Below the pieces are notes generated by a model. The model searched no databases. It was not told the DNA's origin and saw only the letters and a program-made list of their open reading frames with translations. A DNA stretch of 64,000 nucleotides from the IMG/VR virus record IMGVR_UViG_3300027770_000026, positions 201,893 to 265,892 of that record; one strand, 5' to 3'. The translations under genes were made by a program, and so were the position numbers. How positions within the stretch are numbered: the first letter of the stretch is position 1; every line of letters begins with the position of its first letter. Positions 36,913-59,407 of the stretch are shown here, piece after piece.

Positions 36913-36923
36913 GTCCTTACTCC

Positions 36924-38027
36924 TTACTTGGCGCTGACCGCAGCAGTGATGTACGCACCGTACTTCTTAGCAAACTCAGGGTAGGTCGTCATCTTGCTAC
37001 CCTGGAACACCAAACCGTACTGCTGCATCGCAACCTTGACAGCAAGGATGCAGATCTCGGTGTTGAAGTTATCCATCATGTAACGGAAGAAGCAGTCGAC
37101 CATGCCGTGCCACTCCTTGTCGTTAAGCTTACCCTTGTTCTTGGTGTAGTAGTCGCGCAGCTCGTAGCAGAGCGAAGTCATGAGACTGTACTGCGCACTG
37201 ATCTCCTTGATCTTGAGGTCCTTGACCTTACCCGACAACACATCGCCAGGATTAGGCAACTGACCGTTGGTCTTGCGGTGCGCCATGAACTTTACAGCCA
37301 AGCCTTCACCAACTGCGCCACTGACCAAGTCCATCACCGTGCTGTCGCTAGCAGCCTTGTCCTGCAGCATGTCGCTAACGAAATGCCAGCTACGGGGCGT
37401 AGCGAACGCACGACTGGCGCTGTTGGGGCTGAAGTCGTAGAGGTCGCCCTTAGCGTAGTTAAGGTAACCAACCACGTCCGGGTGGATGTTGTTATCCACA
37501 GCCCACAACATCCACGTATCAAAGTCTGCACGGACCTCCAAGTGAACGAAGCGATTAGCCAACGGAGCCGGCATGCGATACGTGACGCCACGGTCACCTT
37601 CGCGGTTACCTGCGGCAATGATCACCACGTTGTCGGGCAGTTCGTACTCGCCAATGCGGCGATTCAGCACCAGCTGGTATGCGCTGGCCTGCACCGCAGG
37701 AGCAGCAGAGTTGAGCTCGTCCAAGAACAGCACCACGTAGGGGTACTTCGCAGCCTGCTCCTTGCTGGGCAGTTCAGCCGGGGGAGCCCAACGCATACGA
37801 CCGCTAGTGCCGTCGAAGTACGGCATACCCTTGAGGTCGGTTGGGTCCAGCAACGCCAAACGCAGGTCAATCAGCAGACCGCCACCTGCGCGAGCAATCT
37901 GCGCAGCCATGTCGCTCTTGCCCAAGCCCGGCGGACCCCAGATGAAAACTGGACGCTTCGTGCGCATGGCCACGTCAACAGCCTTGCGGGCTTCGGTCAA
38001 CGTCACAGTGCGAATTTCGTGGGACAT
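36924..38027 (-). CDS. MoxR-like AAA+ ATPase
   Basis: GPPGLGKS, LFLDE, AAGN, LANRF, TPRSW. Confidence 0.9.
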   Translation of the reverse strand: MSHEIRTVTLTEARKAVDVAMRTKRPVFIWGPPGLGKSDMAAQIARAGGGLLIDLRLALLDPTDLKGMPYFDGTSGRMRWAPPAELPSKEQAAKYPYVVLFLDELNSAAPAVQASAYQLVLNRRIGEYELPDNVVIIAAGNREGDRGVTYRMPAPLANRFVHLEVRADFDTWMLWAVDNNIHPDVVGYLNYAKGDLYDFSPNSASRAFATPRSWHFVSDMLQDKAASDSTVMDLVSGAVGEGLAVKFMAHRKTNGQLPNPGDVLSGKVKDLKIKEISAQYSLMTSLCYELRDYYTKNKGKLNDKEWHGMVDCFFRYMMDNFNTEICILAVKVAMQQYGLVFQGSKMTTYPEFAKKYGAYITAAVSAK

Positions 38028-38056
38028 ATTCAACTCCTTGTTCTAACTGTAGGACT

Positions 38057-40882: not shown

Positions 40883-41302
40883 TTACTTAAACCATCCAAT
40901 CTTCTCACCAGCAGCGACACGACGTTGCCATTCTGCGAGACTGCCTGGATAGCGTATTGCCCAAATCATCCAGAACGCCATGAATGCACTTACGCCCATA
41001 ACCAATTTCCAGTTGTGGGTAGTAAGCCAAAGTATAACCAAACTTGCATCCATGCAAATGAACATGATCCATTTGGCCTTGCTTGGATAAACTTTTTTGT
41101 CTTTCCAGTTTGTAAGAAACGGGCCAAACAGCTTGTGATTCATCATCCAATTGTGCCATTTATCGCTGCTCTTAGCAAAGCAATATGCTGCTATGATTGT
41201 TGGTGTACTCCAGGGAATACCGGGAGTAACCATACCAATATACGCAATACCCAAGCATATCATGCCTGCAACGAAAAACAATGCCTTCTTGATCTTGTCC
41301 AT
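40883..41302 (-). CDS. YbaN/DUF454 inner-membrane protein
   Basis: G...PGIP.TP..IAAYCFAKSS...WM..H.LFGP. Confidence 0.8.
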   Translation of the reverse strand: MDKIKKALFFVAGMICLGIAYIGMVTPGIPWSTPTIIAAYCFAKSSDKWHNWMMNHKLFGPFLTNWKDKKVYPSKAKWIMFICMDASLVILWLTTHNWKLVMGVSAFMAFWMIWAIRYPGSLAEWQRRVAAGEKIGWFK

Positions 41303-41321
41303 AATTTAATCCTCTAGGCAG

Positions 41322-41335
41322 TATTTACATAAGTA
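41322..41335. promoter_or_regulatory. back-to-back late-type motifs (TAAATA minus, TAAGTA plus)
   Basis: GTATTTACATAAGTAC between divergent ybaN-like and heme oxygenase genes. Confidence 0.55.
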
Positions 41336-41340
41336 CTACT

Positions 41341-41895
41341 ATGAGCCTAAAAGAACTTACCAAAGACAAACATACTGCTGCGGAACATACGCCATTTATG
41401 CAGTCAGTGTTCAAACGCACAATGCCCGTTGAAATTTGGGCAGACTATACCCTAAACAAGATGCATTGGTACAATGCTATCGAAATGCGAGCAAGAGCTG
41501 CAGGTCTATTGGAAGACCTTCCGGGGCTCGAACGTACATATCTACTGTATCAGGATTACAGAGCTATGTGTAAAGTTCCCAATCACTTCTACACTGTTAG
41601 CACCATGCGCTACTACACATACATTATGGATTTAGTTGATGTTGATGCCATCATGGCCCACTTGTATGTATGGCACATGGGCGACTTATATGGCGGGCAG
41701 ATGATTAAGCAGATTATGGATCATGTGTCGCATCGTAATTTAGATTTTGATAATCCTGACTTGCTCAAAGCAAACATCCGAGTTAAGTTGCATGATGGCA
41801 TGGCCAATGAAGCTAACTGCGCATTTGATTGGGCAATACGTATTATGAACGAGTACAATGAGGCATTGACTAGTGGACATATGGCAAAAGGCTGA
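41341..41895 (+). CDS. heme oxygenase
   Basis: LKELTKDKHTAAE (proximal His), HLYVWHMGDLYGGQ distal helix, EANCAF. Confidence 0.88.
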   Translation: MSLKELTKDKHTAAEHTPFMQSVFKRTMPVEIWADYTLNKMHWYNAIEMRARAAGLLEDLPGLERTYLLYQDYRAMCKVPNHFYTVSTMRYYTYIMDLVDVDAIMAHLYVWHMGDLYGGQMIKQIMDHVSHRNLDFDNPDLLKANIRVKLHDGMANEANCAFDWAIRIMNEYNEALTSGHMAKG

Positions 41896-42544
41896 AGCTT
41901 GTGGCGATAGAGTCGTGCAATTATTGCAGGGCATTGGCCCAGCAGTTGATCATCCTAGTAATCCTCCTACTACTTTTGGTTGGCACAGTTATATACACTC
42001 GTCTGACCGTGTACGCCGTGCCCACGTTGACATCATCGATGCAAGAGAGACACACAAATTATGGATCATGCACTGTTGCATATTTCCCCACGTAAATGAT
42101 AATAGTCCTATTTTTGGTTTTGACATTATTAGCGGTCCTAGTCGCATTAGTGGAGCATTTCTAGACTTCTCTTTTGCAGGCGTTAATGACCATTCAATGA
42201 TGAAATGGTTTGACCAACGTGTGACAAACTTAAATTGGAAGAAAGAGCGTCAACTGCCAGACTGGGCTGCTGCTATCTTTAGTCCTGCAATGGTAGCCGC
42301 AGGTGCAATAACTGACGAACAGGAAGTTGATCAGTTAACAGGACTTGGTGTTGAATGTTTGGAGTACTATTTAGAGCATGTAGGCCGTCAGAGAAACGAT
42401 CACAAGGACAGTTATCACGAACAAAATAATTACTGTATAAACCAAAAGCGGAATCCACATACTCCACGGACTATGAATATATTGGGTCTTACGCCGGACC
42501 AAGTCACAGAGTTTTTCGAACACCTAATGTTTCCGGAACTTTAA
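41873..42544 (+). CDS. ferredoxin-dependent bilin reductase (PcyA/PcyX-like)
   Basis: MHCCIFP and PIFGFDII give His67/Asp84 with the same 17-residue spacing as PcyA His88/Asp105; LPDWA..IFS; YC..QK.NPHT. Confidence 0.85.
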   Translation: MDIWQKAEACGDRVVQLLQGIGPAVDHPSNPPTTFGWHSYIHSSDRVRRAHVDIIDARETHKLWIMHCCIFPHVNDNSPIFGFDIISGPSRISGAFLDFSFAGVNDHSMMKWFDQRVTNLNWKKERQLPDWAAAIFSPAMVAAGAITDEQEVDQLTGLGVECLEYYLEHVGRQRNDHKDSYHEQNNYCINQKRNPHTPRTMNILGLTPDQVTEFFEHLMFPEL

Positions 42545-42941: not shown

Positions 42942-43205
42942 TCACTCACCGTATCTAATTCTGTACCAAAGCGTTGCTTCATCATCCAACTGTGCCCAGA
43001 TTCTAACTTGGTAGGTTTGGGTGTCGTGTTCTGCTGCCACAGAGATTTCCACCGGGATGTCAAGCGATCTAACATATTCAATTTTACTCCTCTGTGGTTC
43101 TTGCTTACAACAATGATCTACATAACTGCCTGGGTCCATACTATCGTATGAAATATCATCAATTTGAAATAACGCTATTACCGTATGCGTCATCAAGTAC
43201 CCCAT
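42942..43205 (-). CDS. hypothetical protein (start uncertain)
   Basis: ORF filling gap downstream of queE. Confidence 0.45.
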   Translation of the reverse strand: MGYLMTHTVIALFQIDDISYDSMDPGSYVDHCCKQEPQRSKIEYVRSLDIPVEISVAAEHDTQTYQVRIWAQLDDEATLWYRIRYGE

Positions 43206-44059
43206 GCATTCTTAAACAAGTCACATTGTAGTCGTGGGCTATACCACCAACCTTCCTGCATGGCAAGTTCTGCTACCTGACGTGCATTAAGGAAGTATGA
43301 ATCCACAGTGCCACCAACCGGCATTAGATAGACCGGACAATGTACACCAGCAGCTTGATAAAGGCTAACAGCACGACGAACATCATCAAGATCATGCATA
43401 TTACTAACCACAAACTTGAGATAAAAACTGCTCCCACCGCCAGACACCATATTATAATAACTTCTAGCAATGTCAGGTTGTATAGCCTCTTCCCAAGCTT
43501 CACCACTGATTGATAGTTTGGGACTGCAACTCCACGTAACGTGGATGTTACTTTGCGTCTCAAAAAACGTAGCCAACTCCTTGGTGATCTTTTGCGTAGT
43601 GTTTGTTTCAAACGTGACATTCTTTAGGTCTGCAAGCAATGGGTGTTGCAATAATTGTATATAGCTCTTTTGCCATCCTAGCAGTGGTTCTCCGCCAGTG
43701 ATAACCAAATGAATGTCTCGTCCGTTATCCTGTGTCCACTTGCCATTAGGAATAATGTCCACAAAACGTTTTGCAATTTCGTCAATAGTTAGTGTGGGGC
43801 TAAACTTCTTAAATTTAGGATGCCAACTTGCATAACTATCACATCCAGTTGGTGCAAGCGGCAAAGAATCATAACTATCGTACTTGCTAAGTTGATTAGC
43901 AATACGTTCGGGCTCATCGCTGCGTTCACCAAGCGGTAAGCCAAATCCTCTACACTGGAAGTTACATCCAAATGTACGGAAGAACACACTGGGCACACCT
44001 GCCCAACGTCCTTCACCTTGTATGCTGTAAAAGATTTCTGCTGTTTTAATCTTGCTCAT
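43193..44059 (-). CDS. queE: 7-carboxy-7-deazaguanine synthase (radical SAM)
   Basis: EIFYSIQGEG, GCNFQC...CD, TGGEP, FETN, SPKL. Confidence 0.88.
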   Translation of the reverse strand: MSKIKTAEIFYSIQGEGRWAGVPSVFFRTFGCNFQCRGFGLPLGERSDEPERIANQLSKYDSYDSLPLAPTGCDSYASWHPKFKKFSPTLTIDEIAKRFVDIIPNGKWTQDNGRDIHLVITGGEPLLGWQKSYIQLLQHPLLADLKNVTFETNTTQKITKELATFFETQSNIHVTWSCSPKLSISGEAWEEAIQPDIARSYYNMVSGGGSSFYLKFVVSNMHDLDDVRRAVSLYQAAGVHCPVYLMPVGGTVDSYFLNARQVAELAMQEGWWYSPRLQCDLFKNAWGT

Positions 44060-44907
44060 GGTAAGTTGTTCTCTATTAGGAATTTTTCATATACTTCCTG
44101 CCAGGACTCGGATTGCAATATATTGGTACTGGTCATTTGTGTATTGAGTGGACGCTTTGCTGGTTTATTTAGGTTAGCTAGTTTGCTAGGTACAATTTCT
44201 GTAGACAGATTATACGCTAGTTTAATGCACTTTGCAAATTCATAAAAGCTATCGCCGTAATTTGCTCGCGGTACAAGATGATTGAGCCCGCGGTCCAACT
44301 TCAAACGTTCCCATGTCTTCCTTGCAATCCAATCACTACTAGTTGGAACGGTGAATTGATCATTAACTACTTCTATTCTATCCTTAGTTGCAGCCGCACA
44401 TAGTATTGCAGTATGAAAGTTCTTATTACTTGTAGAATATACTGCAGATACTCGATAGATGGTATAGGAGGTGGTATATGACATCACTTCTTCTTCGCCA
44501 TCAGACTTGCTGCTCCCATAAAAGTTTACGGGATTCTTATCCGACTGTTCAACATACTTTCCGGTTAAATCAGTAAAACCGTCAAACACATAATCAGTAG
44601 AATAATGTACTAGATGAAAGCCCATGTTATTACTGAGCCGTGCAAGCTGTGCAGGAAATTGAACATTAGCATGCCAGCAAAGATGCCTATTCATCACATC
44701 TTCGGAGCCGTCTACGTCAGTATATGCAGCAGCATTGATTACGTATTTAGGGGCAACTGCACGAACAAAACGTTCAACTGCAGGCGAGTCCACAAGATCA
44801 AATTTGGATCTATCATGCGCAATGATTTCATAATCACTAGGTGCAAACTTTTGTAGACTAGTGCCTACTTGACCAGTTGCACCAAAGATTAGTACACGGT
44901 CACCCAT
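44056..44907 (-). CDS. rmlD: dTDP-4-dehydrorhamnose reductase
   Basis: GATGQVG, NAAAYTDVD, STDYVFDG, YGSSK. Confidence 0.9.
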   Translation of the reverse strand: MGDRVLIFGATGQVGTSLQKFAPSDYEIIAHDRSKFDLVDSPAVERFVRAVAPKYVINAAAYTDVDGSEDVMNRHLCWHANVQFPAQLARLSNNMGFHLVHYSTDYVFDGFTDLTGKYVEQSDKNPVNFYGSSKSDGEEEVMSYTTSYTIYRVSAVYSTSNKNFHTAILCAAATKDRIEVVNDQFTVPTSSDWIARKTWERLKLDRGLNHLVPRANYGDSFYEFAKCIKLAYNLSTEIVPSKLANLNKPAKRPLNTQMTSTNILQSESWQEVYEKFLIENNLP

Positions 44908-45460
44908 AATGTACTGCCTGCGTAACATCAATGCCCGTGCGGTCCTTATCAGCTTGAATTATCTGATTACGCATTGGAAGTAGATAACTTGTAAACTCGT
45001 CAACACTCCAAAAGTTGATGCAATACTCGTCGTCCTTCTGCCATAAGCTCTTAGTGACACCATAGTTAAAAATAGTGTTGTCTTCTAGCGCAAGGAAGCC
45101 ATGCGCGTATCCGGGCGGCACATAGAGATAATTGAGATTCTCCGTACTAAGTTCAAAGATACCAGTGTTTAGATAGGTTGGTGAATCCTTACGCAGGTCA
45201 ATAACAAAGTCAACTGCACTACCTTGAATCACACTTACTAGCTTACCCTGTGGATTCTTTAGCTGGTAATGCAATCCACGTAGCACATACTTCTTGTTAT
45301 ATGAAGTGTTTTGCTGCAGTACTTCAAACTCTTTTTCCCAACCAAACCACGAATGATTATATGTTTCTTGAAATGATCCACGATTGTCTGCAAAGTTCTT
45401 AAACTGATACAGGCGTAGGTCGTTGAGATTTTCAAACATTTCGTAAGTTTTTTCATTCAT
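44900..45460 (-). CDS. rmlC: dTDP-4-dehydrorhamnose 3,5-epimerase
   Basis: DNRGSF, VLRGLHYQ, QGKLV, DLRKDSPT, GYAHGF. Confidence 0.92.
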   Translation of the reverse strand: MNEKTYEMFENLNDLRLYQFKNFADNRGSFQETYNHSWFGWEKEFEVLQQNTSYNKKYVLRGLHYQLKNPQGKLVSVIQGSAVDFVIDLRKDSPTYLNTGIFELSTENLNYLYVPPGYAHGFLALEDNTIFNYGVTKSLWQKDDEYCINFWSVDEFTSYLLPMRNQIIQADKDRTGIDVTQAVHYG

Positions 45461-46344
45461 CGAATTAGTTTCCATAGGTATTGTCCGTAAGGGGTCTTGT
45501 CGCATAGTTTAGCAGTAACTGCTAGGTCTTCGTGTAATATCCATTCATTTTTGAATGCAGCCAAATGTGGAGAGCCTATTAGTACATTCTGCGTAGTCTG
45601 CATTATATGTACATATTCAGCAGCTTGCAAGAGCGATGGTGCATTACCCGTGTCAAACCAAACAGTACCTTCGTCTAGAATTGTTACAAACAGTTCTTCG
45701 CGATTGGCATACTCTTTGTTAACATCGGTAATTTCAAACTCGCCTCGATCGGATGGTTTTAAGTTAGCAGCAATTTCAAATATGGACGTTGGATAGAAAT
45801 ACAATCCAGTTACTGCGAGGTCGCTCTTTGGTTCCTTTGGCTTTTCTTCCAAAGAAAGCACACGACCATGATCATCTAATTCTACTACGCCAAATCGTTC
45901 TGGATCCTGTACATGCATGGCGAAGCATACTGCATTCTTTGCAGCTCGTGCTAACTGCAATGCTATATCAAACTTTGACCCATGGAATAGATTGTCTCCA
46001 AGTATCAATGCAATACGTTCAAATTGATCATATCCATCGATTTGGTCTGCTACAATAGTAAATGCTTGTGCAATACCACGTGGCTTTGGCTGTACTGCAA
46101 AATGCAAGTTAATGCCAAACTGTTGCCCTGCACCCTCGAACAATTTTTTAAATACTGTTTGCTCGTCTGGGTTTGTGATTAGTACAACGTCCCTAATACC
46201 TGCAGTAATTAGTGTAGTTAGTGCATAGTAGATCAGTGGCTTGTCGTATACAGGTACTACCTGTTTAGTACATGCTAGTGTTGCAGGGAAAAGACGTGAA
46301 CTCTTGCCCGCGGCAAGAATAATGCCCAGTGTTTTTCTATCCAT
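45457..46344 (-). CDS. rmlA: glucose-1-phosphate thymidylyltransferase
   Basis: GIILAAG..SRL.P, VYDKPLIYY, LGDN, EEKP, RGEFEITD, WFDTG. Confidence 0.92.
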   Translation of the reverse strand: MDRKTLGIILAAGKSSRLFPATLACTKQVVPVYDKPLIYYALTTLITAGIRDVVLITNPDEQTVFKKLFEGAGQQFGINLHFAVQPKPRGIAQAFTIVADQIDGYDQFERIALILGDNLFHGSKFDIALQLARAAKNAVCFAMHVQDPERFGVVELDDHGRVLSLEEKPKEPKSDLAVTGLYFYPTSIFEIAANLKPSDRGEFEITDVNKEYANREELFVTILDEGTVWFDTGNAPSLLQAAEYVHIMQTTQNVLIGSPHLAAFKNEWILHEDLAVTAKLCDKTPYGQYLWKLIR

Positions 46345-47318
46345 TATTGAAACCTTTCTGGTCGTTGTAAGTACCAATCAACGGTACGCTCGAGTCCCTG
46401 TGTAAAACTCATGTTAGCTTGCCAACCTAATGATTGTAGCTTGCTACTATCTATCGCATACCTAAAGTCGTGCCCTGCTCGATCAGTAACATAACTGATT
46501 AGGCTTTTGGACTTGCCCATGATCTCAAGTATGCGCGTGGCAAGGTCAATATTATTAACTTCATTATCGCCGCCAATGCAGTATTGTTCGCCTAGATTAC
46601 CATGCAGTAGTAGTGTTTCTAGTGCAGTGCAATGATCATCTACCCATAGCCAGTCGCGTATGTTCATACCATTGCCGTATACAGGAATTGGTTTGTCTGC
46701 TAGCGCATGGCGTATAACAGTAGGAATAAACTTTTCCTTGTTCTGTCTTGGTCCATAGTTATTACTACAGTTACTAATCATTGCAGGAACATTGTGTGTT
46801 TGATAGTACGAACGCACAAAGTGATCACTAGCTGCTTTGCTAGCACTGTATGGACTATTAGGAGCATACTGACTTAGTTCATTAAATGGTTCATCATGTT
46901 CACGTAAAGACCCAAAAACTTCGTCTGTACTTACATGCAGGAATCGAAATTCTTTGCTTACCTTTCTCATGTAAAAACGTACACTATCTAGAAAGTTAAC
47001 AGTGCCCATTACATTATGTTTAACAAATGGTCCACTACTTTCAATGGATCGGTCTACGTGACTTTCAGCAGCAAAATGTACGATATAATCTGGTTCAAAG
47101 TAGCATAGAACCTTCTTGTTCATAGTTACATGATTGATATCGTCTTTGAGGAATATATAATTGGGATGATGTTCGAGCTCTGCAACATTATCTATATTAG
47201 CAGCATAGCTCATTATGTCCAAATTGACCAAACGCCAGTCTGGATAATTCTGCGCCCAATGCAGTAGGAAGTTGCTGCCAATAAAGCCGCAACCGCCTGT
47301 GATAAAAATTGTTTTCAT
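46344..47318 (-). CDS. rmlB: dTDP-glucose 4,6-dehydratase
   Basis: TGGCGFIG, AAESHVDRS, STDEV, YSASK, NNYGP. Confidence 0.95.
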   Translation of the reverse strand: MKTIFITGGCGFIGSNFLLHWAQNYPDWRLVNLDIMSYAANIDNVAELEHHPNYIFLKDDINHVTMNKKVLCYFEPDYIVHFAAESHVDRSIESSGPFVKHNVMGTVNFLDSVRFYMRKVSKEFRFLHVSTDEVFGSLREHDEPFNELSQYAPNSPYSASKAASDHFVRSYYQTHNVPAMISNCSNNYGPRQNKEKFIPTVIRHALADKPIPVYGNGMNIRDWLWVDDHCTALETLLLHGNLGEQYCIGGDNEVNNIDLATRILEIMGKSKSLISYVTDRAGHDFRYAIDSSKLQSLGWQANMSFTQGLERTVDWYLQRPERFQ

Positions 47319-47319
47319 A

Positions 47320-47535
47320 CTAGGATTTATTTGACTTACGAGCAGTGTGCCAATTTAAACTGCAGTTGGGACTACAGAACACTATAGTTACAATATCTTT
47401 GGGAGTAGGACCTGCAATCCAGTACTTTGGGTAACCGCTATCAACATAATGTTCATTCCATGCTGACAACAGTAAACCGCATTGACCGCATGTTAATTGC
47501 TGATCCACCAATTCTCCCATGGGTAATCTACCCAC
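47320..47535 (-). CDS. small Cys-containing (zinc-binding-like) protein
   Basis: CGQC and FCSPNC. Confidence 0.45.
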   Translation of the reverse strand: MGRLPMGELVDQQLTCGQCGLLLSAWNEHYVDSGYPKYWIAGPTPKDIVTIVFCSPNCSLNWHTARKSNKS

Positions 47536-48056
47536 ACATCTTCTTCTGCCTTGTTGATTTCTTGTCCAATAAAGTCTACTTTAATCTTGCTCTGACTGGC
47601 CAAATTATCTAGTAGTACAGCAAAGCAAACATTGTTGTTCCATACGTTCTTCCAATGTTCGTCCATTGAAATGCCAGCGGTCATCCAGCTGTTCATAATA
47701 GCATTGATGGTTGCACCGGTATCGTTGATATCATCTACGATGAGAATATTTTTAGGAATAGCATTAGCTAATAGCTCAGTAGGATCGTCATTGAAGAAAT
47801 CAATTTCTTCGTTGGAGTCGCCTAGTGCATCATCAATCATCCACTTATGAACTTCAACTTCACTAGCGTCTCGCAGACTTACTCGCAATGTGTGACATGG
47901 TACTTGATAATACTGACTGATCATTACAGCAGGAATCAAACCACCACGAGTAATGCCAACCACATAGTCTGGCTTCCAATTGTTCAGCGTCATCTTTCGG
48001 ATGATCTCGCTTGTTAGATTACTAACGTCCTGCCAGGTAACTTGTTGATGTTTCAC
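47493..48056 (-). CDS. type I phosphoribosyltransferase (purine PRT-like)
   Basis: ITRGG, PRPP motif LIVDDINDTGAT, YPWE. Confidence 0.85.
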   Translation of the reverse strand: MKHQQVTWQDVSNLTSEIIRKMTLNNWKPDYVVGITRGGLIPAVMISQYYQVPCHTLRVSLRDASEVEVHKWMIDDALGDSNEEIDFFNDDPTELLANAIPKNILIVDDINDTGATINAIMNSWMTAGISMDEHWKNVWNNNVCFAVLLDNLASQSKIKVDFIGQEINKAEEDVWVDYPWENWWISN

Positions 48057-48427
48057 TTGGATTGTCCGGTTAATAGTGCTTCGGTAATACGATATACATT
48101 ACACGCTTCTACTACATCTTCCCATTGCTTGCGAAGAATTTCATATTTTTCCATTGCTTCCCAATTTGGGATAGGTACCGGACTCTGCTGTTCTTTCATG
48201 AAATGTTTGAGTAGCTGGATGTGCTCGTACACTTCATTTAGATCAATGGTGTATTTGTCAGTACCGATGGTGCTACACAATTCCCCCGTTTTTGTAAAGT
48301 AGCTACTGGCGCTAGCAACACCAGTAGTACCTGCATTAGTAATATAATATCCACCATTTGGAGTGGCGCCAATGGTCCCACCTGACCATACAGAATCAAC
48401 GGTTGGAATTGAGTTTGAGGATGTCAT
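48053..48427 (-). CDS. hypothetical protein
   Basis: Ser/Thr/Gly-rich N-terminus with helical C-terminus; coupled. Confidence 0.55.
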   Translation of the reverse strand: MTSSNSIPTVDSVWSGGTIGATPNGGYYITNAGTTGVASASSYFTKTGELCSTIGTDKYTIDLNEVYEHIQLLKHFMKEQQSPVPIPNWEAMEKYEILRKQWEDVVEACNVYRITEALLTGQSK

Positions 48428-49073
48428 AAAATTCCTTCTTAAGTGCTGCATCAGTATTAAACGCGCCTAGCATGATTGCAGTTACCATGTCGTTTTCGTG
48501 TTCACGAACACCACGATGTGTCATGCAGTGATGTTCTGCTTTGACTACTACTGCAACGTTTGGAGTCTTTGCATACTCGCTAAGTGCATTAGCAATCTGT
48601 GTAGTCATCTCTTCCTGAATCTGTGGACGTTCCGCAATATGATGCACAATACGATTGAACTTGCTTAGACCAATAACTTCCCCTTCGGGTACAATACCAA
48701 CCCATGCACGACCTACAATGTTTTGAAAGTGATGTGCGCAAGTGCTTCGAATACTGATTGGGCCACTAGAGTACAAGCTCTTGTATCCCATGTTTGGGAA
48801 GCTGGTAATACGTGGAGCCGGAGCATAACGTCCACCAAATGTTTCCTTGAGGAACATCTTAGCAACACGACGTGCAGTATCCTGAGTGTTGTGATCGTGT
48901 TCGATATCAATAACCAGAGAGTTAAGTACTCCGGTCATTTGCGTGGTAACTTCGTCTATAAGCAAGTCTAGCTCGCCCTCTTCAATATGTTGACTAATGT
49001 TATCGTTTGCAAAGAAACGATCGCCGCTTGTCACTAAACGCTGACGAATGCGCTGGCTAATTAGATCTGACAT
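48396..49073 (-). CDS. folE: GTP cyclohydrolase I
   Basis: STCAHH, GLSKF.R, RPQIQE, HHCMTHRGV. Confidence 0.93.
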   Translation of the reverse strand: MSDLISQRIRQRLVTSGDRFFANDNISQHIEEGELDLLIDEVTTQMTGVLNSLVIDIEHDHNTQDTARRVAKMFLKETFGGRYAPAPRITSFPNMGYKSLYSSGPISIRSTCAHHFQNIVGRAWVGIVPEGEVIGLSKFNRIVHHIAERPQIQEEMTTQIANALSEYAKTPNVAVVVKAEHHCMTHRGVREHENDMVTAIMLGAFNTDAALKKEFYDILKLNSNR

Positions 49074-49074
49074 T

Positions 49075-50151
49075 TTATTTTCCTATTTGATTGATTAATG
49101 AATCACAACTAAAGAAGTCGTTGTGTAACTTGTCTACTAATTTATTTAGGCTTGGGGTATGGTAGTCATAAAATTTGATAGCGTAATCAATTTTATCAAC
49201 CAAACTCTTACGATTCAGTTGATAGCTATCCCATGACTCAGTCCACTCGCTTGGATACTTAAAGTTTAGCTCATACATTTCTGTATAACTTAGTCGGTCT
49301 GGTACCATTGGTATTGCACCCACCAGCGCACCTTCATACACACCTATACCCAGTGTTTCCTGCAAGTTAGCAGAGAACACTACCTTTGACTCTGCAAGTA
49401 GCTGATGATACTCTGCTTTGGTTAGTTTGGTATCCTGACATACTACAAACTCGTACTGTGGCAATTGAGTAGCAAGGTCACGGAAGATTTCCACCTGCTT
49501 CTCGGGTGCAATACGATGCGGGAATATCACACGGTTCTTCTTGGGTGTGCTTGCTAGTGGTGCTAGCTTTTCACGCAGGTATTCCATTGGCCACCCTGTA
49601 GTTACAATCTTGCTATCATATCGTGTAACTGCTGGAGTGAATCGCAGCAATTGTTCACAGAAGATAACGGCATGAAAATGCGTAGCAAAGTAGTTATGAT
49701 CATAACAATCATACATACTACGCTCTGCATTACGTACCCAAGGCTTGTTACCAATTAGTCTACCTAGAAAGTCTTGTGGATCATAACTGCCCGCATGCCA
49801 AAGTCCGTGTAAGGTCCAATTATAACCTAGCAGTTCCTTCATATACTTGAGCTGCACTACTACAGGATTCCAAGCATCAGTTAGCAGTATGTGATCGTTT
49901 GATCCAACATTACCCTCATTCAACTGTGACAAAAACTGGCACAGTTGTGAACTCTTCCAATAGTTTGTATCACTAAAGTTTAGAAAAGCACCCGGAGTAA
50001 GCTCGCTGTTTACCTGTATGCCATTTACTTGACATACATCAAATCGATCACCTAGCTTTTCTTCTAGGATATTTGGAACGTGCGTGAACCATTCTCCAGT
50101 ATACCTGGTATCAATTGGCTCAAGCGAGAAGATCCAAATCTTAGGCTTCAT
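49075..50151 (-). CDS. GT-B fold (GT4-like) glycosyltransferase
   Basis: FPHRIAPEK, QETLGI..YEG, P.RLSY.E. Confidence 0.75.
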   Translation of the reverse strand: MKPKIWIFSLEPIDTRYTGEWFTHVPNILEEKLGDRFDVCQVNGIQVNSELTPGAFLNFSDTNYWKSSQLCQFLSQLNEGNVGSNDHILLTDAWNPVVVQLKYMKELLGYNWTLHGLWHAGSYDPQDFLGRLIGNKPWVRNAERSMYDCYDHNYFATHFHAVIFCEQLLRFTPAVTRYDSKIVTTGWPMEYLREKLAPLASTPKKNRVIFPHRIAPEKQVEIFRDLATQLPQYEFVVCQDTKLTKAEYHQLLAESKVVFSANLQETLGIGVYEGALVGAIPMVPDRLSYTEMYELNFKYPSEWTESWDSYQLNRKSLVDKIDYAIKFYDYHTPSLNKLVDKLHNDFFSCDSLINQIGK

Positions 50152-50374
50152 TGTTTGGCTGTTGCTCATTGTTGTTACGGCGCCGATATGAACGATCTCT
50201 ACGACGTAGGAATGCTTCATACTTGCCCCATGTGGTCTGTGGCTTATACAAGTCTGCTTCGTTAAATGGCTTGCCCTCAAATCTGCACCAATTCTTATAG
50301 TCTTCTAGATCTTCAAAGATCTGTATAACAATAGGGGTAAAGCCGGTTTCGTAATCTGTCTTACGCTTCTTCAT
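50141..50374 (-). CDS. hypothetical protein
   Basis: IFEDLE.Y..WCRFEG..FNEADLY. Confidence 0.6.
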   Translation of the reverse strand: MKKRKTDYETGFTPIVIQIFEDLEDYKNWCRFEGKPFNEADLYKPQTTWGKYEAFLRRRDRSYRRRNNNEQQPNNEA

Positions 50375-50892
50375 TATTCTCCATCCTTAATGATTTGGTC
50401 ATTTGCATAGTCGTCCCAGTTAGTAAAACGATCTCGATCCATGAGATCGCGTAGTGGCCAACACCAGACGCCTGGGTTGGTTGAATCAAATCCTATGTCA
50501 TCAATCTTTACAGTTGTATTATAGTTGAATTTTTCAACATGTGCAAGCTTAACACTGATCATAGGAATAAACTTTCTATGTGTAGCATATGTAATCTTGT
50601 CTTGCACAAACTGTGCCTTTTCTACTGTGAAGTCAAGTGTAACCCAAAAGTTTGCATCGATGAGACCGGTAACCATTTGATCCCACTTCTTCCAGCTTTC
50701 TAGTGATGCGGGATTAAACGAACAGTCTGCACCTAGATACACACCCTTAATCCAATTTTGATCTGCTAGTTTAATAATGGTATCTACTGGGTGTATACCA
50801 ACTACAAACAATAGCTCTTTACCAAAAAGTGGGGTATGTTCAATTTCAACCCCAGTGAAGAATTCTGATTGACTAGTATGTTTCACTTCCAT
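50374..50892 (-). CDS. conserved hypothetical protein in deazaguanine cluster
   Basis: FFTGVEIEHTP, KIDD.GF..TNPGVWC. Confidence 0.7.
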   Translation of the reverse strand: MEVKHTSQSEFFTGVEIEHTPLFGKELLFVVGIHPVDTIIKLADQNWIKGVYLGADCSFNPASLESWKKWDQMVTGLIDANFWVTLDFTVEKAQFVQDKITYATHRKFIPMISVKLAHVEKFNYNTTVKIDDIGFDSTNPGVWCWPLRDLMDRDRFTNWDDYANDQIIKDGE

Positions 50893-51233
50893 TCCTTTTC
50901 GCAGCCGTTTTCGTTATCTTCGGATACAGAGATACGCACTGCTCGCTTGGGATAACGTTGATTAATAGTCAAGTATAGCGTGTCTGCTAACATCTCGCAA
51001 CTCAGATAACTGAGTGTAAGTGTGCCATTACCATATAGGTCTTCTAACCAACGCTTAAACTGAATAAACTCGATATCCCTGTCGTTATGAAACACTTCAA
51101 TCCATACCTTAAAGTGAAAGATATGGCGATGTGGATTTGCCAAAAAGCTTACGTCAAGTAGCTTTGGATCTGTTGCTGCTGCCGGATAACAGTGAATGCC
51201 TTCCTTTTGAAAACTAACCCAAATGTAATTCAT
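50883..51233 (-). CDS. second QueD-like / T-fold protein
   Basis: H..YP, HRHIFH, SCEM, SEDNENG. Confidence 0.55.
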   Translation of the reverse strand: MNYIWVSFQKEGIHCYPAAATDPKLLDVSFLANPHRHIFHFKVWIEVFHNDRDIEFIQFKRWLEDLYGNGTLTLSYLSCEMLADTLYLTINQRYPKRAVRISVSEDNENGCEKEWK

Positions 51234-51568
51234 TAACTAATCCTCAAGGTTTCGTTAAACACAATCTCTCGAACACGTTCGGACAAATCCGTGCCTTCGC
51301 CAATTAGATGAACACTGGTATGATCTTCTGAATTGCGCTTGTTTTTAACATCAGGCTTGCGTGAACTAACTTCTACAACTTGTCCTCCGTGTAGATAATG
51401 TATAGTTAGATGCAGTCTACTACAACTATCAAAATCTACACCGTGATGGCCAGACTGGCCGATAGTCATATCATCGCCAAGACAATCCATACTATCATCG
51501 TCGTATACCTTCAAACGCTTGGCTACAGTAGCTAATTGATACGCTAGCCAATTTCTAAACTTGTTCAT
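51233..51568 (-). CDS. hypothetical protein
   Basis: Coupled ORF. Confidence 0.55.
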   Translation of the reverse strand: MNKFRNWLAYQLATVAKRLKVYDDDSMDCLGDDMTIGQSGHHGVDFDSCSRLHLTIHYLHGGQVVEVSSRKPDVKNKRNSEDHTSVHLIGEGTDLSERVREIVFNETLRIS

Positions 51569-51576
51569 GCATCACC

Positions 51577-53034
51577 TTAATTAAAAAAGTCTTCAAACAT
51601 AGTTTGACCGTTTTGTGCCTTTGTACCGGTCATACCTCTTGTTCCAATAATGTCCATCCAGTAGCGAGTATGATCATCGATTAGTTGCAGACTTTTGTCG
51701 CGTGAACCTAATGAAAAGATGTCATCTACTAGCTGTCTAAACGATACTAGATCAAAATCATGATTAACTAACATGTCGGGCACAATACCCTGATCGTACA
51801 TTCGATTGGCGCGTTGTACTGATTCGATGTGCATGTATGTATTATGCGCCATAAGGATGTTGTATGTTAACGTATCCCACGATGTCTTGCCTTCCTTGCC
51901 AATCTTATTCAAATCGCCAGGTGCATATGTACAAATATCCTTGATCATGCAACGTGCAGTTACCGGACTGTCTTCGAAGTGTGCATAAATCCTATCGGCA
52001 TCGACTGCTTGCTTTAATGGGCGAGTATCACTCGAATACTTTTTATTATCAAGTCCACCTTCCATTCGATATGTCCATTTCTTTTTGTCTTCGATAACAA
52101 TTTCTCTGTACACCTGTCCGTTAGCAGCAGCAAGGAAGGGACTAGCACAGTCAAAGCTAATAGTAAAATTAGAATTGTGATACTTTCTAACTGCACGTTG
52201 GACGTCCGTTAGCAAAGTAGCCCATTCTAATTTACTGGTTCCGAGAAAGTGCATCCAATCTTGCTTGCCTTTTTCCAATAACCCGTCGTGCATGATAATA
52301 ACAATACGTCGAAGAGCCAAATGGATATCGCACATGTTCTGTCCACCCATTGCCCATCCGTTAAAGTGATTTTCGTGTATAGCAGGATCACAGTAGTGCT
52401 TCATGGTCTCATACCACTTGTCGGCTTGCCTGTGTGTTTCACCCTGCAGTACATTTAAGAATTTACACTCACCTGTACGATTTTGCAAGAAGTAATTGTT
52501 ATTAATATTGGTGGCATCAACAGCATCTTGATAGTCTTTGATACCAGTTTTTTCTTTTGCTATGGCATTTCTACCTACCCATACTGGAACGTCTAGGCTC
52601 ATCCCATAGTCCATATAAGTGTCCATCCACTTGAGCACTTGCTCGCGTTTCTTTTGAGCTTTTGGACAAGCAGGATTAGCCCAGTCGCCTTCCCAAACAC
52701 CTTTACCAATTTGGAATCCACCCGAGTCGCCTATTAACCAAGTACTAGCACGATCTCGATCCCGTACCATGCTTTCGCCCATGTCAATTTTGTTGACATC
52801 TAGATTAGCATGACCTGCAGAATATAGATTCCACTTATAGTTGAAATAACAATCTTTGGGTTTAAGCCAATCCAACCCATCTATACCGTATTCAAATCCT
52901 TGTGGGACGCGAGACGGTGGATAGTAGTTTGGATCGCTACGTGTCTTTCCAATTGTACCGGTAAAGGCATTTGAGATAGCAGGCAAAAAGATTGCGTAAT
53001 CGTTCTGCTTGCTAGTTAGGTCAACGATTTCCAT
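51577..53034 (-). CDS. tRNA-guanine transglycosylase-like (DpdA-type) protein
   Basis: DSGGFQ, SLDVP, VLQG, GWAMGG, HFLG, SFDC: TGT catalytic motifs in order. Confidence 0.75.
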   Translation of the reverse strand: MEIVDLTSKQNDYAIFLPAISNAFTGTIGKTRSDPNYYPPSRVPQGFEYGIDGLDWLKPKDCYFNYKWNLYSAGHANLDVNKIDMGESMVRDRDRASTWLIGDSGGFQIGKGVWEGDWANPACPKAQKKREQVLKWMDTYMDYGMSLDVPVWVGRNAIAKEKTGIKDYQDAVDATNINNNYFLQNRTGECKFLNVLQGETHRQADKWYETMKHYCDPAIHENHFNGWAMGGQNMCDIHLALRRIVIIMHDGLLEKGKQDWMHFLGTSKLEWATLLTDVQRAVRKYHNSNFTISFDCASPFLAAANGQVYREIVIEDKKKWTYRMEGGLDNKKYSSDTRPLKQAVDADRIYAHFEDSPVTARCMIKDICTYAPGDLNKIGKEGKTSWDTLTYNILMAHNTYMHIESVQRANRMYDQGIVPDMLVNHDFDLVSFRQLVDDIFSLGSRDKSLQLIDDHTRYWMDIIGTRGMTGTKAQNGQTMFEDFFN

Positions 53035-53037
53035 AGA

Positions 53038-53769
53038 TTACTTGGATAGTCCCATGATATAGTAGTTGTACTCGACTAGTCCACTGTCTAGTGTCATGCA
53101 CATTAGTCCACGCTCGGCTATCTTGAGGCTTGCGCTTTGTGCATGTGAACTGAGATTTAGTACCTTTTGAAACACTGGTACAGAGAATGGAAGGTCGCCT
53201 ACAGTTTTACCAGTAATATTATTTGCAAATACAAAGCGTCCACTGTGTGTTGCAGGTGTACCAAAGCTTACTTCAAGATTAGTTTTCACAGTCTTGATAA
53301 CAAAATTAGTTTCGCCTGGATTCATTGCTGCTTGTAGATTAAATCTCTGTACGCTGGCAAGCGGCGGAGCAAAATCCACACTCCACTTGGCACCAACAAA
53401 CTTAGTTGGTGGTACTAATGTTTCAATTAGTGCTTTGCTCATTAGTCGATAGTTATTGGTAAAGTCCCCTGACGCATTAGCAAATTCAACTCGATCTAGC
53501 TTGTTGCCTTCGTGGCCTAGGCCAATAGATACGTTTTCTTCATACTCTGGACAGTCAAGCAATCGCTGTAGCAGATCTAACTGCCCAAGACCAAATGTGG
53601 TCTCTTCGTTATTAAACTTTAGCTTACTTGTTGCTGTTAGCACCACAGTCTTTTCTGGATTGGTGCTGCTTAGTGTAATACCGTTTGCATCTTGGTCTAC
53701 TCTAACAGCGGGGAATACACCCACGCCATGTACGTACTTGATAACATCTCGAAAAATATCCTGAATCAT
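53038..53769 (-). CDS. sliding clamp (T4 gp45-like)
   Basis: 243-aa alpha/beta protein directly downstream of polymerase; C-terminal YNYYI. Confidence 0.6.
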   Translation of the reverse strand: MIQDIFRDVIKYVHGVGVFPAVRVDQDANGITLSSTNPEKTVVLTATSKLKFNNEETTFGLGQLDLLQRLLDCPEYEENVSIGLGHEGNKLDRVEFANASGDFTNNYRLMSKALIETLVPPTKFVGAKWSVDFAPPLASVQRFNLQAAMNPGETNFVIKTVKTNLEVSFGTPATHSGRFVFANNITGKTVGDLPFSVPVFQKVLNLSSHAQSASLKIAERGLMCMTLDSGLVEYNYYIMGLSK

Positions 53770-59377: not shown

Positions 59378-59407
59378 TGATATGCTCCAACTATGCAGTA
59401 TTTAGTC

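Follow-up and report, generated by a model that had tools for sequence, protein, structure and literature searches.

A 7-deazaguanine DNA-modification module with a partner glycosyltransferase in a freshwater jumbo phage

What does a phage gain by interleaving 7-deazaguanine genes with a glycosyltransferase and a full dTDP-rhamnose pathway, and could the product be a guanine analogue in DNA that carries a sugar? In this study, we investigated this question in a window of 64,000 nucleotides (positions 201,893 to 265,892 of the IMG/VR record IMGVR_UViG_3300027770_000026), which belongs to a freshwater jumbo phage related to Pseudomonas phage PA5oct. The initial annotation described one co-oriented, tightly coupled run at 43193-53034, downstream of the polymerase and clamp, consisting of TGT/DpdA-like, QueD-like, glycosyltransferase, folE, PRTase, rmlB-A-C-D and queE genes, and this observation was confirmed, as all the named genes are present on the minus strand with gaps or overlaps of only a few bases. 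Five further small ORFs were also noticed in the run, and a canonical QueD was detected outside it, at a distance of 8 kb. The genes of the module and their immediate context are as follows.

53825-56491, minus strand: family-B DNA polymerase, head of the conserved module
53038-53769, minus strand: sliding-clamp-like protein
51577-53034, minus strand: DpdA-family (TGT-fold) guanine transglycosylase, 485 aa
51233-51568, minus strand: unknown 111-aa ORF, lineage-specific
50883-51233, minus strand: DpdL, a 116-aa QueD-like T-fold protein, proposed CDG decarboxylase
50374-50892, minus strand: conserved unknown 172-aa protein of the module
50141-50374, minus strand: small conserved 77-aa ORF that precedes the glycosyltransferase in relatives
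49075-50151, minus strand: GT4-type GT-B (retaining-type) glycosyltransferase (GT), 358 aa
48396-49073, minus strand: GTP cyclohydrolase I (FolE)
48053-48451, minus strand: unknown 132-aa ORF
47493-48056, minus strand: type-I purine phosphoribosyltransferase (PRTase, XPRT/HGPRT-like)
47320-47535, minus strand: unknown 71-aa ORF
46344-47318, minus strand: RmlB, dTDP-glucose 4,6-dehydratase
45457-46347, minus strand: RmlA, glucose-1-phosphate thymidylyltransferase
44900-45505, minus strand: RmlC, dTDP-4-dehydrorhamnose 3,5-epimerase
44056-44931, minus strand: RmlD, dTDP-4-dehydrorhamnose reductase
43193-44059, minus strand: QueE (7-carboxy-7-deazaguanine synthase), a variant with a long insert between the second and third cluster cysteines
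35270-35794, minus strand: canonical PTPS/QueD (CPH4 synthase), which completes the pathway

With reference to the context genes, the polymerase was recognized by Pfam DNA_pol_B (1.6e-38) together with the exonuclease domain, and is 47% identical to the PA5oct polymerase. The clamp-like protein has no Pfam hit, but hhalign gives 99.9% to the protein of Sinorhizobium phage Phosso annotated as sliding clamp, and its position between the polymerase and the DpdA-family gene is conserved in 79 of 80 loci. The DpdA-family protein itself recorded no Pfam (including Pfam TGT), PHROG or NCBIfam hit. However, its AlphaFold model (pLDDT 92.5) returned only tRNA-guanine transglycosylases among the top 50 Foldseek PDB matches (best E 6e-7), and D103/S104/G106 of DSGGFQ, D148, and D295 of FDxASP are invariant or nearly so in 50 diverse relatives, with the DSGGFQ and FDxASP aspartates being invariant. 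Comparison by hhalign gave 98.3% to a TGT-domain phage protein, 95.6% to the annotated TGT of Xanthomonas phage X1, and 96.5% to the DpdA-like gene of Acidovorax phage ACP17, which lies next to its DpdL.

The gene described as QueD-like in the initial annotation was identified in this study as DpdL. It carries the DpdL signature LxxxHRHxF (LANPHRHIF), as do 60 of 65 relatives, a motif defined in bioRxiv 10.1101/2023.04.13.536721, and it is 59% identical to its ACP17 homologue ASD50405.1 and 34% identical to CGPG_00067 of Cellulophaga phage phiST, which is DpdL, while Atlas feature and structure links lead to PTPS clusters. The expected base is therefore 7-deazaguanine (dDG), as in phiST, and not the 7-carboxy-7-deazaguanine (CDG) named in the initial annotation. 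The canonical QueD at 35270-35794 scores 52.8 bits with Pfam PTPS, above cutoff, though its motif reads CYMLHGY rather than CxxxHGH. FolE was recognized by Pfam (1e-45), PHROG (7.9e-52) and NCBIfam (2.6e-48). QueE was recognized by PHROG 2076 (6e-49) with partial NCBIfam QueE hits, displays C32-x3-C36...C73-DSY, and is 31% identical to PA5oct QueE. The PRTase was recognized by Pfam Pribosyltran (8.5e-14) with xanthine PRTase as the best NCBIfam match, the PRPP motif ILIVDDINDTGAT being visible in the translation, and it is conserved in the module in 29 of 80 loci and in PA5oct. The claim that no queC lies in the window holds, and a search of the rest of the genome, which had been proposed beforehand as a check, disclosed a weak QueC-like PP-loop gene at genome positions 139752-140342, whereas QueF and QueA were not found in the 265,892-base record, which is about 80% complete.

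The GT model (pLDDT 85.5) matched BshA, glycogen synthase, PglA and MshA by Foldseek (1e-8), and the EX7E motif (E271...E279) and H218/R219/K224 are invariant. These fold matches are generic GT4 enzymes; the tRNA-queuosine mannosyltransferase is among them, but T4 DNA glucosyltransferases are not among the top 50 PDB matches, and a cyanophage 'DNA alpha-GT' is only rank 50 in the viral library. Among the rhamnose genes, RmlB scored 417.6 bits with TIGR01181, above the equivalog cutoff of 365, while RmlA scored 334 bits with TIGR01207 against a cutoff of 361 (Pfam NTP_transferase 7.8e-62), RmlC 140.8 bits with TIGR01221 against a cutoff of 155.8 (Pfam 3e-43), and RmlD 208 bits with TIGR01214 against a cutoff of 224 (Pfam 2.2e-63).

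Having established the genes, we asked whether the GT belongs to the module or merely lies beside it. FolE, QueD, QueE, DpdL and DpdA form the published route to 2'-deoxy-7-deazaguanine in phiST. What is new here is the GT. The module, in the order PolB, clamp, DpdA, DpdL, GT, ... FolE, PRT, QueE and RNaseH, is colinear in PA5oct and in 80 IMG/VR loci. The GT family sits beside the DpdA-family gene in PA5oct, ACP17 and X1 and in 38 of 39 informative metagenomic relatives. Of the 39 loci with at least 5 kb downstream of DpdA, 38 have both DpdL and the GT family, and the single exception, locus L030, lacks both. The same family was observed within the deazaguanine genes of phage lineages with other genome sizes and gene orders, namely ACP17 (QueD, FolE, a homologue of the 172-aa protein, DpdA-like, GT, DpdL, QueE), X1 (FolE ... 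GT, TGT, DpdL, QueE) and Phosso (DpdL, GT, FolE ... QueE), where the DpdA-like gene lies elsewhere. Again, seven alphaproteobacterial genomes hold DpdA-like and GT genes side by side, four of them showing with these a Vut_1/YhhQ-like gene (the 7-deazapurine-precursor transporter family), and no FolE, QueE or DpdL lies nearby. Each gene is rare in that order, being found in 1 and 2 of 301 genomes. The GT of this phage is 49% identical to PA5oct EST35_0317, 43% to the ACP17 copy, 52% to that of Phosso and 43-49% to the bacterial copies, which sit beside a DpdA-like gene. The functional link rests on synteny across several phage lineages and bacterial islands, and not only on adjacency in this window.

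Relatives carry different sugar-metabolism genes in the same slot. Of 29 relatives with at least 8 kb downstream, 19 hold sugar-type genes there, in at least five combinations, including UDP-Glc/GDP-Man dehydrogenase, GFO/IDH/MocA with ADH, a nucleotidyltransferase-cupin, SDR epimerase/dehydratase and an extra GT. However, the slot also collects homing endonucleases and IMPDH/GMP-reductase genes, indicating an insertion hot-spot. The rml operon occurs only in this phage (locus L005 is a second record of it) and in its nearest, 87%-identical relative, where it keeps its place between PRT and QueE.

Taken together, the interpretation in the initial annotation is partly supported. That this is a 7-deazaguanine DNA-modification module, and that the GT belongs to it functionally, is supported, and no glycosylated deazaguanine in DNA turned up in the searchable literature; a sugar-bearing 7-deazaguanine in DNA is thus plausible and apparently undescribed, but unproven, and the identification of the sugar as rhamnose is weaker still. 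In the view we tentatively favor, FolE, QueD and QueE would turn GTP into 7-carboxy-7-deazaguanine, DpdL is proposed to decarboxylate it to 7-deazaguanine, and the DpdA-family enzyme would swap this base for guanine in phage DNA after replication. The GT would then add a sugar from a nucleotide-sugar donor to the deazaguanine, on DNA or, less likely, on the base before insertion. In this lineage the donor would be dTDP-L-rhamnose made by the phage's own RmlBACD, and related lineages would use other sugars. The PRTase most likely would re-capture the guanine released by base exchange as GMP, feeding GTP back into the pathway. The result would be a bulky G-analogue that blocks restriction enzymes. 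Of these statements, the gene identities, folds (from predicted models), motifs and synteny are what our data show, the dDG pathway of phiST and the G-specific restriction resistance of PA5oct DNA come from the literature, and the acceptor and donor of the GT, the timing of its action and the role of the PRTase are inferred from sequence alone.

Several published findings are consistent with this view. PA5oct DNA resists enzymes in a pattern that points to modified G, and is hit by nucleases specific for hypermodified DNA (PMC12191111). Expression of dpdA with dpdL from phiST or ACP17 in E. coli gave no dDG, and the authors suggested that further enzymes may be needed. Glycosylation of 7-deazaguanines has precedent, as huimycin and dapiramicin are glycosylated free bases. 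In addition, no ThyA-type hydroxymethylase that could provide a pyrimidine acceptor was found, the one weak hit being a Rad50-like protein, and the phage uses ThyX. Nevertheless, 7-deazaguanine has no side-chain hydroxyl or amine at C7, so that the attachment point would have to be unusual (a C-glycoside, N2 or O6), and phiST makes plain dDG with DpdL and no such GT, indicating that the GT is an add-on and not required for base replacement. Complex prediction for DpdA, DpdL and GT gave no answer.

The closest competing reading, which the initial annotation had itself raised for the rhamnose, is that the DNA carries only plain 7-deazaguanine or another non-glycosylated derivative, and that the rml operon, and possibly the GT, serve glycosylation of virion proteins such as collagen-like fibres or capsid decoration, or of the host surface, lying in the replication module only because that stretch is an insertion hot-spot expressed early. 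This alternative has real support, since the genome holds at least three other confident glycosyltransferases that could use dTDP-rhamnose, one of them at genome positions 17387-17743 and two in this window.

16835-19750, minus strand: 971-aa three-domain glycosyltransferase (GT4+GT2+GT2), followed by an FkbM methyltransferase at 16161-16838
60072-61079, minus strand: GT1-family glycosyltransferase in a collagen-like, 2OG-oxygenase cluster (58430-61690)

The former (Pfam GT2 1.8e-24 and GT1-family 2.4e-11, with FkbM 1.5e-12 on the neighbour) lies beside the gp23 capsid gene at 14473-15663 and a 2605-aa ORF, the latter (Pfam Glycos_transf_1 7e-15) has 2OG-FeII_Oxy_3, DUF6445 and a Collagen-repeat protein as neighbours, and a collagen-repeat fibre gene lies at 28006-30147. 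The lineage-specific nature of rml, the mixed content of the slot and the production of dDG by phiST without this GT also favor this reading. However, it explains rml but not the GT, whose family accompanies the deazaguanine genes in the relatives and phages described above and in seven bacterial chromosomes that have no virion genes nearby, and is lost together with DpdL in L030, while rml keeps the same position inside the deazaguanine genes in the nearest relative. We consider it less likely than the favored view, though more likely than the other alternatives.

Less probable again is the possibility that the GT acts on a soluble intermediate, glycosylating the free 7-deazapurine base, as HuiG does in huimycin biosynthesis, or a pterin, as in cyanobacterial pteridine glycosides, the glycoside being either the true substrate of the DpdA-family enzyme or a separate small molecule. 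Huimycin uses UDP-GlcNAc, and dapiramicin carries a 6-deoxy sugar predicted to be made by Rml-like enzymes; FolE with a PTPS-like protein and a GT resembles pteridine-glycoside synthesis; the DpdA-family protein is about 100 residues longer than TGT and lacks its zinc site, so its pocket may differ; and a YhhQ-like base transporter sits between DpdA-like and GT in bacteria. Yet the bacterial units have no FolE or PTPS nearby, which ties the GT to the transglycosylase and not to pterin chemistry, TGT-family pockets bind the guanine face tightly, so that a bulky N-glycoside would be hard to fit, and no such metabolite is known from phage infection. Very unlikely, in our view, is the entry of the deazaguanine before replication, whereby the PRTase would convert the free base into a nucleotide, as ToyH does in toyocamycin synthesis, to be reduced, phosphorylated and used by the phage polymerase, the TGT-like protein having another role such as tRNA modification. 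The conservation of the PRTase, the IMPDH/GMP-reductase genes that join it in relatives and the location directly beside the polymerase and clamp agree with this, but every phage known to carry 7-deazaguanines encodes a DpdA, and the conclusion of the field is insertion after replication. Moreover, ACP17, X1 and the bacterial units have DpdA-like and GT without a detected PRTase, both catalytic aspartates of the transglycosylase are invariant, and guanine salvage explains the PRTase more simply.

With regard to the smaller features, no family was assigned to the 172-aa protein, which is present in 41 of 80 loci and is 26% identical to ACP17 ASD50402 (6e-10), and the 77-aa ORF is 41-49% identical to a cluster that lies between DpdL and the GT in 46 related ORFs. 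The other three ORFs have no family hit; the 111-aa ORF was found elsewhere only in L005 and weakly in locus L104, and the 132-aa ORF has weak homologues in five loci. The GT starts at 50151 (MKPKIW) and not at the upstream TTG, and the likely start of RmlA is the ATG at 46347.

The viral contig of 265,892 bases, of which bases 201893-265892 were analyzed in this study, is classed by IMG/VR as linear and about 80% complete, and the same sequence recurs in freshwater and lake metagenomes from 2017 to 2025. A second IMG/VR record, here L005, is 100% identical across the region, whereas a megablast of the region against phage records gave no match. The window encodes a T4-type major capsid protein, a family-B polymerase, ThyX, a DNA ligase, an RNase H-type 5'-3' exonuclease, collagen-like fibres, and a heme oxygenase with a PcyA-like bilin reductase pair, and its replication module is colinear with that of Pseudomonas jumbo phage PA5oct. 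The gene run described in the initial annotation was confirmed, as every gene listed there exists on the minus strand with gaps or overlaps of only a few bases. Its interpretation, a 7-deazaguanine DNA modification that may be decorated with a sugar such as rhamnose, was partly supported and could be sharpened. FolE (1e-45), the PRTase, RmlB/A/C/D and QueE (PHROG 6e-49) are clear from profile searches. Among the Rml proteins, RmlB scores 417.6 bits, above its equivalog cutoff, while RmlA (334 against 361), RmlC (141 against 156) and RmlD (208 against 224) fall just under theirs, but each best-matches its own model, so that all four enzymes of the dTDP-L-rhamnose pathway are present. A promoter and terminator scan returned counts no better than those of shuffled sequence, and attempts to assign a function to the 172-aa protein (u172) and the other small ORFs of the run gave no result. 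The features on which the following comparisons rest, beside the 485-aa TGT/DpdA-like protein, are:

50883-51233, minus strand, DpdL, 116 aa, listed as "QueD-like" in the initial annotation
start at 50151, minus strand, the GT, a predicted GT4-type retaining GT-B glycosyltransferase
50141-50374, a conserved 77-aa ORF, because of which the true start of the GT is placed at 50151
35270-35794, a canonical PTPS/QueD, 8 kb away

The 485-aa protein hits no curated model, including Pfam TGT (PF01702), which had no hit in the protein or anywhere in the genome, and no PDB sequence, even as a profile. Pfam, PHROG, NCBIfam and PDB-sequence searches on this protein and on the GT gave nothing useful, and the identities of both therefore came from structure prediction and family alignments. 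A model built on 50 diverse relatives has a pLDDT of 92.5, and all of its top 50 PDB Foldseek matches are tRNA-guanine transglycosylases, with a best E of 6e-7 and a TM by target of about 0.53, indicating a predicted TGT-type TIM-barrel fold. D103, S104 and G106 of the DSGGFQ motif (D103-S104-G105-G106) and D295 in ISFDCASP are invariant in the 50 relatives down to 26% identity, and the two aspartates are taken as equivalent to the catalytic Z. mobilis D102 and D280, the latter being the nucleophile in an FDC-like motif, on motif resemblance rather than on a residue-level superposition. The zinc site CxCxxC...H of tRNA TGTs is not conserved, as no conserved Cys/His cluster lies downstream of D295, the best-conserved candidates being C368 at 70% and H397 at 84%. 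Profile links exist only through intermediate phage proteins, namely the GR7B TGT-domain protein (98.3%) and the annotated TGT of phage X1 (95.6%), and the DpdA-like gene of phage ACP17, which lies next to its DpdL homologue, matches at 96.5%. With phiST CGPG_00065 of the DpdA3 subfamily (phiST, Campylobacter phages), hhalign gives 77.9% with an E of 1.8e-5, but over only 90 columns. That the enzyme acts on DNA rather than tRNA is inferred, with only indirect support from its position between the clamp and replication genes and from the G-specific restriction resistance of PA5oct DNA.

The GT model shows a two-Rossmann GT-B fold close to GT4 members, with Foldseek matches that include BshA, PimB', PglA, MshA and glycogen synthase at E 1e-8 to 1e-6 and a TM of about 0.6. 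The EX7E motif (E271 and E279 in ETLGIGVYE) and the basic residues H218, R219 and K224 (FPHRIAPEK), which are assigned to binding of the donor diphosphate, are invariant in 24 relatives. The protein does not match Pfam Glycos_transf_1, and its only hit is a sub-threshold one to Glyco_transf_61 at 17.9 bits. No specific similarity to the DNA glycosyltransferases of phages was observed beyond the shared fold, since the T4 enzymes are not among the top 50 PDB matches and a cyanophage 'DNA alpha-GT' is only rank 50 in the viral library.

With reference to the gene listed as "QueD-like", our data identify it as DpdL. It carries LANPHRHIF at residues 31-39, which is the LxxxHRHxF signature that Cui, Hutinet et al. 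2023 use to separate DpdL, their proposed 7-carboxy-7-deazaguanine (CDG) decarboxylase, from QueD with its CxxxHGH, and 60 of 65 relatives carry the motif. A tblastn search gives 34% identity (6e-7, over 91% of the query) to phiST CGPG_00067, the founding DpdL, and the protein is 59% identical to ACP17 ASD50405.1, an ACP17 dpdL having also been tested in that paper. Atlas links lead to PTPS clusters with a score of 0.95 and a TM of 0.88, although direct hhalign to the window's own QueD is weak, at 19%. The canonical PTPS/QueD scores 52.8 bits on Pfam PTPS, but its motif is atypical. It has CYMLHGY where QueD has CxxxHGH and AYR where E. coli QueD has AHR, so that two of the three usual zinc-binding histidines appear to be tyrosines. 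Thus FolE, QueD, QueE, DpdL and a DpdA-family enzyme are all present, which is the published gene set for 2'-deoxy-7-deazaguanine (dDG), the base that replaces all G in phiST. The dDG peak is reported at 267 Da, with the protonated base ion at m/z 151. No QueF or QueA was found. QueC is needed for preQ0/ADG. A search of the rest of the genome for queC, which the initial annotation had named as a check, returned one 196-aa PP-loop protein about 100 kb away, outside the window, at G000:C1:139752-140342 of the genome (L002:1105-1695, plus strand). It has an SGGLDS motif and a C-terminal Cys cluster, and scores 34 bits on Pfam QueC but only 26 bits against an NCBIfam QueC cutoff of 150. It lies among genes that are not part of the module, is absent from the related modules and is only marginally similar to the PP-loop gene of X1, and consequently we left it out of the mechanism.

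The main result of this study is that the GT is the constant partner of the transglycosylase. Both proteins are extremely common in metagenomes, each having about 8,000 or more 90%-identity clusters in public metagenomes; each search returned about 8,000 hits among the 8,000 candidates scored, often on contigs of 200-350 kb, and with no Pfam domain recorded for any listed hit. In 80 IMG/VR loci fetched with the DpdA-like protein, the order PolB, clamp, DpdA, DpdL, GT, FolE, PRT, QueE, RNaseH recurs. A second GT cluster in these loci is the same family (hhalign 100%), and among 39 loci with at least 5 kb downstream, 38 have both the GT family and DpdL. The one exception, L030 (IMGVR_UViG_3300032284_000725), lacks both, but keeps DpdA, FolE, PRTase and QueE and has none of the sugar-type genes, and it would serve as a natural comparison lineage. 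The same GT family lies inside the deazaguanine genes of Acidovorax phage ACP17, Sinorhizobium phage Phosso and Xanthomonas phage X1, whose genome sizes and gene orders differ from those of this phage. Contigs binned as Neomarinimicrobiota (335 kb), Fischerella, Legionellales and a Methanobacteriota archaeon (loci L105, L106, L107 and L108) also carry the full phage module from PolB to RNaseH, and are almost certainly jumbo-phage contigs mis-binned into MAGs.

The GT family also occurs in bacterial chromosomes (loci L109-L115), namely those of Devosia, two Pelagibacterium genomes, Ochrobactrum, Shimia, Sulfitobacter and a Rhizobiales isolate, where it sits next to a DpdA-like gene. In four of the seven loci a Vut_1/YhhQ-like gene is called with the pair, of which two were scanned and scored just under the Pfam cutoff. 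No FolE, QueE or DpdL lies nearby. The units lie next to a resolvase in Pelagibacterium, or a two-component system and a second GT in Shimia and Sulfitobacter, and conserved neighbours of 311-895 aa have no family hit. Both genes are rare in that bacterial order, at 1 and 2 of 301 genomes sampled, and repeated adjacency is therefore not chance. The YhhQ family imports queuosine precursors, which ties the GT to the base-exchange step and not to pterin chemistry. These units could be a bacterial DNA or tRNA modification island of a new kind.

Sugar genes were noticed in the same slot of many relatives. Of 29 relatives with at least 8 kb downstream of DpdA, 19 carry sugar-type genes there, in at least five combinations, including UDP-glucose/GDP-mannose dehydrogenase, a GFO/IDH/MocA oxidoreductase with a zinc-ADH-like gene, a nucleotidyltransferase-cupin protein, SDR epimerase/dehydratases beside QueE, SGNH/DUF6071 proteins, and an extra GT1-family enzyme. 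The rml operon, in contrast, occurs only in this phage (the window and L005, a second record of it) and in its 87%-identical relative, where it keeps the same place between the PRTase and QueE. The pattern recalls the lineage-specific sugars of T-even phages, though the slot also holds homing endonucleases and IMPDH/GMP-reductase genes, so that it is partly an insertion hot-spot. An IMPDH/GMP-reductase gene (Pfam 2e-68) recurs in the module of relatives next to the PRTase, at positions 14250-15368 of locus L010 and in 16 other loci, which hints that these phages manage the guanine nucleotide pool around the base exchange.

Compared with the dDG system of Cellulophaga phage phiST (FolE, QueD, QueE, DpdL, DpdA3; Cui, Hutinet et al. 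2023), the enzyme set is the same, including DpdL with its signature and a distant TGT-like transglycosylase, there is no QueC in the module, and the genes lie next to replication genes. However, phiST has no homologue of this GT, no PRTase and no sugar-nucleotide genes, and its DpdA3 of 259 aa matches only part of the 485-aa protein; its product was measured, whereas that of the present module is predicted from sequence. In PA5oct (Wroclawvirus), the genes PolB, clamp, DpdA-like (34% identical), GT (49%), DpdL (55%), PRTase, QueE and RNaseH are colinear with those found here, but there are no rml genes and no FolE in that stretch; the host of PA5oct makes dTDP-rhamnose itself. Its DNA is reported to resist restriction in a way that points to modified G, and the phage is also restricted by nucleases that target only hypermodified DNA, with the chemical nature of the modification not reported in the papers that could be searched. 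The T-even phages share the logic of a non-canonical base put in DNA and then decorated by a GT-B enzyme using a nucleotide sugar, as an anti-restriction measure, with a sugar that varies between lineages. There, however, the base is a pyrimidine with a hydroxymethyl handle made at the nucleotide level, hydroxymethylcytosine glucosylated by alpha- and beta-glucosyltransferases, and the GT families differ.

Glycosyltransferases whose acceptor is a 7-deazaguanine derivative are the tRNA-queuosine mannosyltransferase (QTMAN/GTDC1) and HuiG of huimycin biosynthesis. QTMAN is a GT4-type GT-B that acts on the base within a nucleic acid, and it appears at rank 6 of the Swiss-Prot fold matches of the GT (E 1.8e-8, TM 0.57), though this match is no better than for generic GT4 enzymes. 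Its acceptor is the cyclopentenediol of queuosine in tRNA, and no QueA or other queuosine-completing gene was found here, which speaks against a queuosine-type acceptor. HuiG glycosylates a preQ0 derivative, but works on a free base in a secondary-metabolite cluster without a transglycosylase; dapiramicin, with a 6-deoxy sugar, is another glycosylated free 7-deazapurine. The bacterial Dpd system (DpdA/DpdB/DpdC, inserting preQ0/ADG into DNA) likewise has a TGT-family enzyme that inserts a 7-deazaguanine into DNA and occurs on mobile islands, and the alphaproteobacterial units of DpdA-like, YhhQ-like and GT resemble it in outline. In the present case, no DpdB or DpdC homologues were identified, the partner is a glycosyltransferase, and the transglycosylase is too distant to hit Pfam TGT. 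A hydroxymethyl-pyrimidine acceptor for the GT was also considered and rejected, because the only thymidylate-synthase-like hit is a chance match inside a Rad50/SbcC-like ATPase at 854-2629 and the phage has ThyX.

In the mechanism that we consider most likely, GTP would be converted to CDG by FolE, QueD and QueE, DpdL would yield 7-deazaguanine, and the DpdA-family enzyme would exchange it for G in phage DNA. The GT would then add a sugar, in this lineage probably from phage-made dTDP-L-rhamnose, and the PRTase, joined in relatives by IMPDH/GMP reductase, would recycle the released guanine. The presence of the enzyme set, the motifs and the synteny are results of this analysis and the folds are predicted from models, whereas the decarboxylase activity of DpdL, which is a proposal in the literature as well, the action of the transglycosylase on DNA, and the acceptor and donor of the GT are inferred. 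A 7-deazaguanine DNA modification as such is likely, and that the GT works in that pathway is only slightly less so. That the sugar is on the DNA base is tentative, somewhat less likely than not, and that this sugar is rhamnose here is doubtful, each of these claims containing the ones before it. The core is the known dDG-type system, while the conserved pair of DpdA-family enzyme and GT, with lineage-variable sugar genes, has not been described and predicts a new DNA hypermodification. We found no paper describing a glycosylated deazaguanine in DNA.

Several points weigh against this reading. 7-deazaguanine has no obvious handle for a sugar, phiST manages without this GT, and the GT shows no special likeness to known DNA glycosyltransferases; complex prediction for the DpdA-like protein, DpdL and the GT gave no answer and is not evidence either way. 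Moreover, the phage has other plausible sinks for dTDP-rhamnose, including a further glycosyltransferase elsewhere in the genome and those of two regions of the window:

14473-15663, gp23-type capsid gene
16161-16838, FkbM methyltransferase
16835-19750, 971-aa protein with three glycosyltransferase domains
19836-27653, 2605-aa ORF
28006-30147, 713-aa collagen-repeat fibre with an endosialidase-chaperone domain
58430-59377, minus strand, collagen-repeat protein
59457-60017, minus strand, DUF6445
60072-61079, minus strand, GT1-family glycosyltransferase
61076-61690, minus strand, 2OG-Fe(II) oxygenase

The triple glycosyltransferase and the FkbM methyltransferase lie between the capsid gene and the 2605-aa ORF. 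The cluster at 58430-61690 looks like a hydroxylation and glycosylation system for a collagen-like virion protein, and its GT and DUF6445 pair is conserved in the nearest relative. Hence the alternative offered in the initial annotation, that the rhamnose feeds virion or host-surface glycosylation, stays open, while the GT itself is hard to detach from the transglycosylase.

The furthest-reaching possibility, which we regard as less likely than not, is that phages of this very abundant jumbo-phage clade, together with ACP17-, Phosso- and X1-like phages and some alphaproteobacterial islands, carry a glycosylated 7-deazaguanine in their DNA, made by a dedicated pair of DpdA-family transglycosylase and GT4 glycosyltransferase. 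The sugar would vary by lineage (L-rhamnose in this phage), and the linkage would be unusual, such as a C7 C-glycoside or an N2 or O6 glycoside. Glycosylated DNA bases described so far are pyrimidine derivatives, namely glucosyl- and arabinosyl-hmC, base J and related hmU derivatives, and this would be the first sugar-bearing purine analogue in any genome. It would explain the unidentified G modification of PA5oct, a therapy-candidate phage, and may also explain why co-expression of dpdA and dpdL from phiST or ACP17 in E. coli gave no dDG, for which the authors suggested that other enzymes may be needed. Given the abundance of the two proteins, the modification would be common in lakes and seas, and would affect restriction, CRISPR and glycosylase-type defences, and how well such DNA is sequenced. 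The same pair is carried by the cultured phages PA5oct, ACP17, Phosso and X1.

Other genes lie close to the module. QueD is flanked by an AAA/MoxR-like ATPase (36924-38033) and a DUF2201 metallopeptidase/VWA protein (33915-35147), within 33915-38033, which is a known two-gene pairing of unclear role in phages. Within 40883-42544, the heme oxygenase (41341-41895, plus strand) and the PcyA-like bilin reductase (41873-42544, plus strand) are inserted on the opposite strand between QueE and RNase H, with a DUF454 gene beside them at 40883-41302, and these genes suggest a cyanobacterial host.
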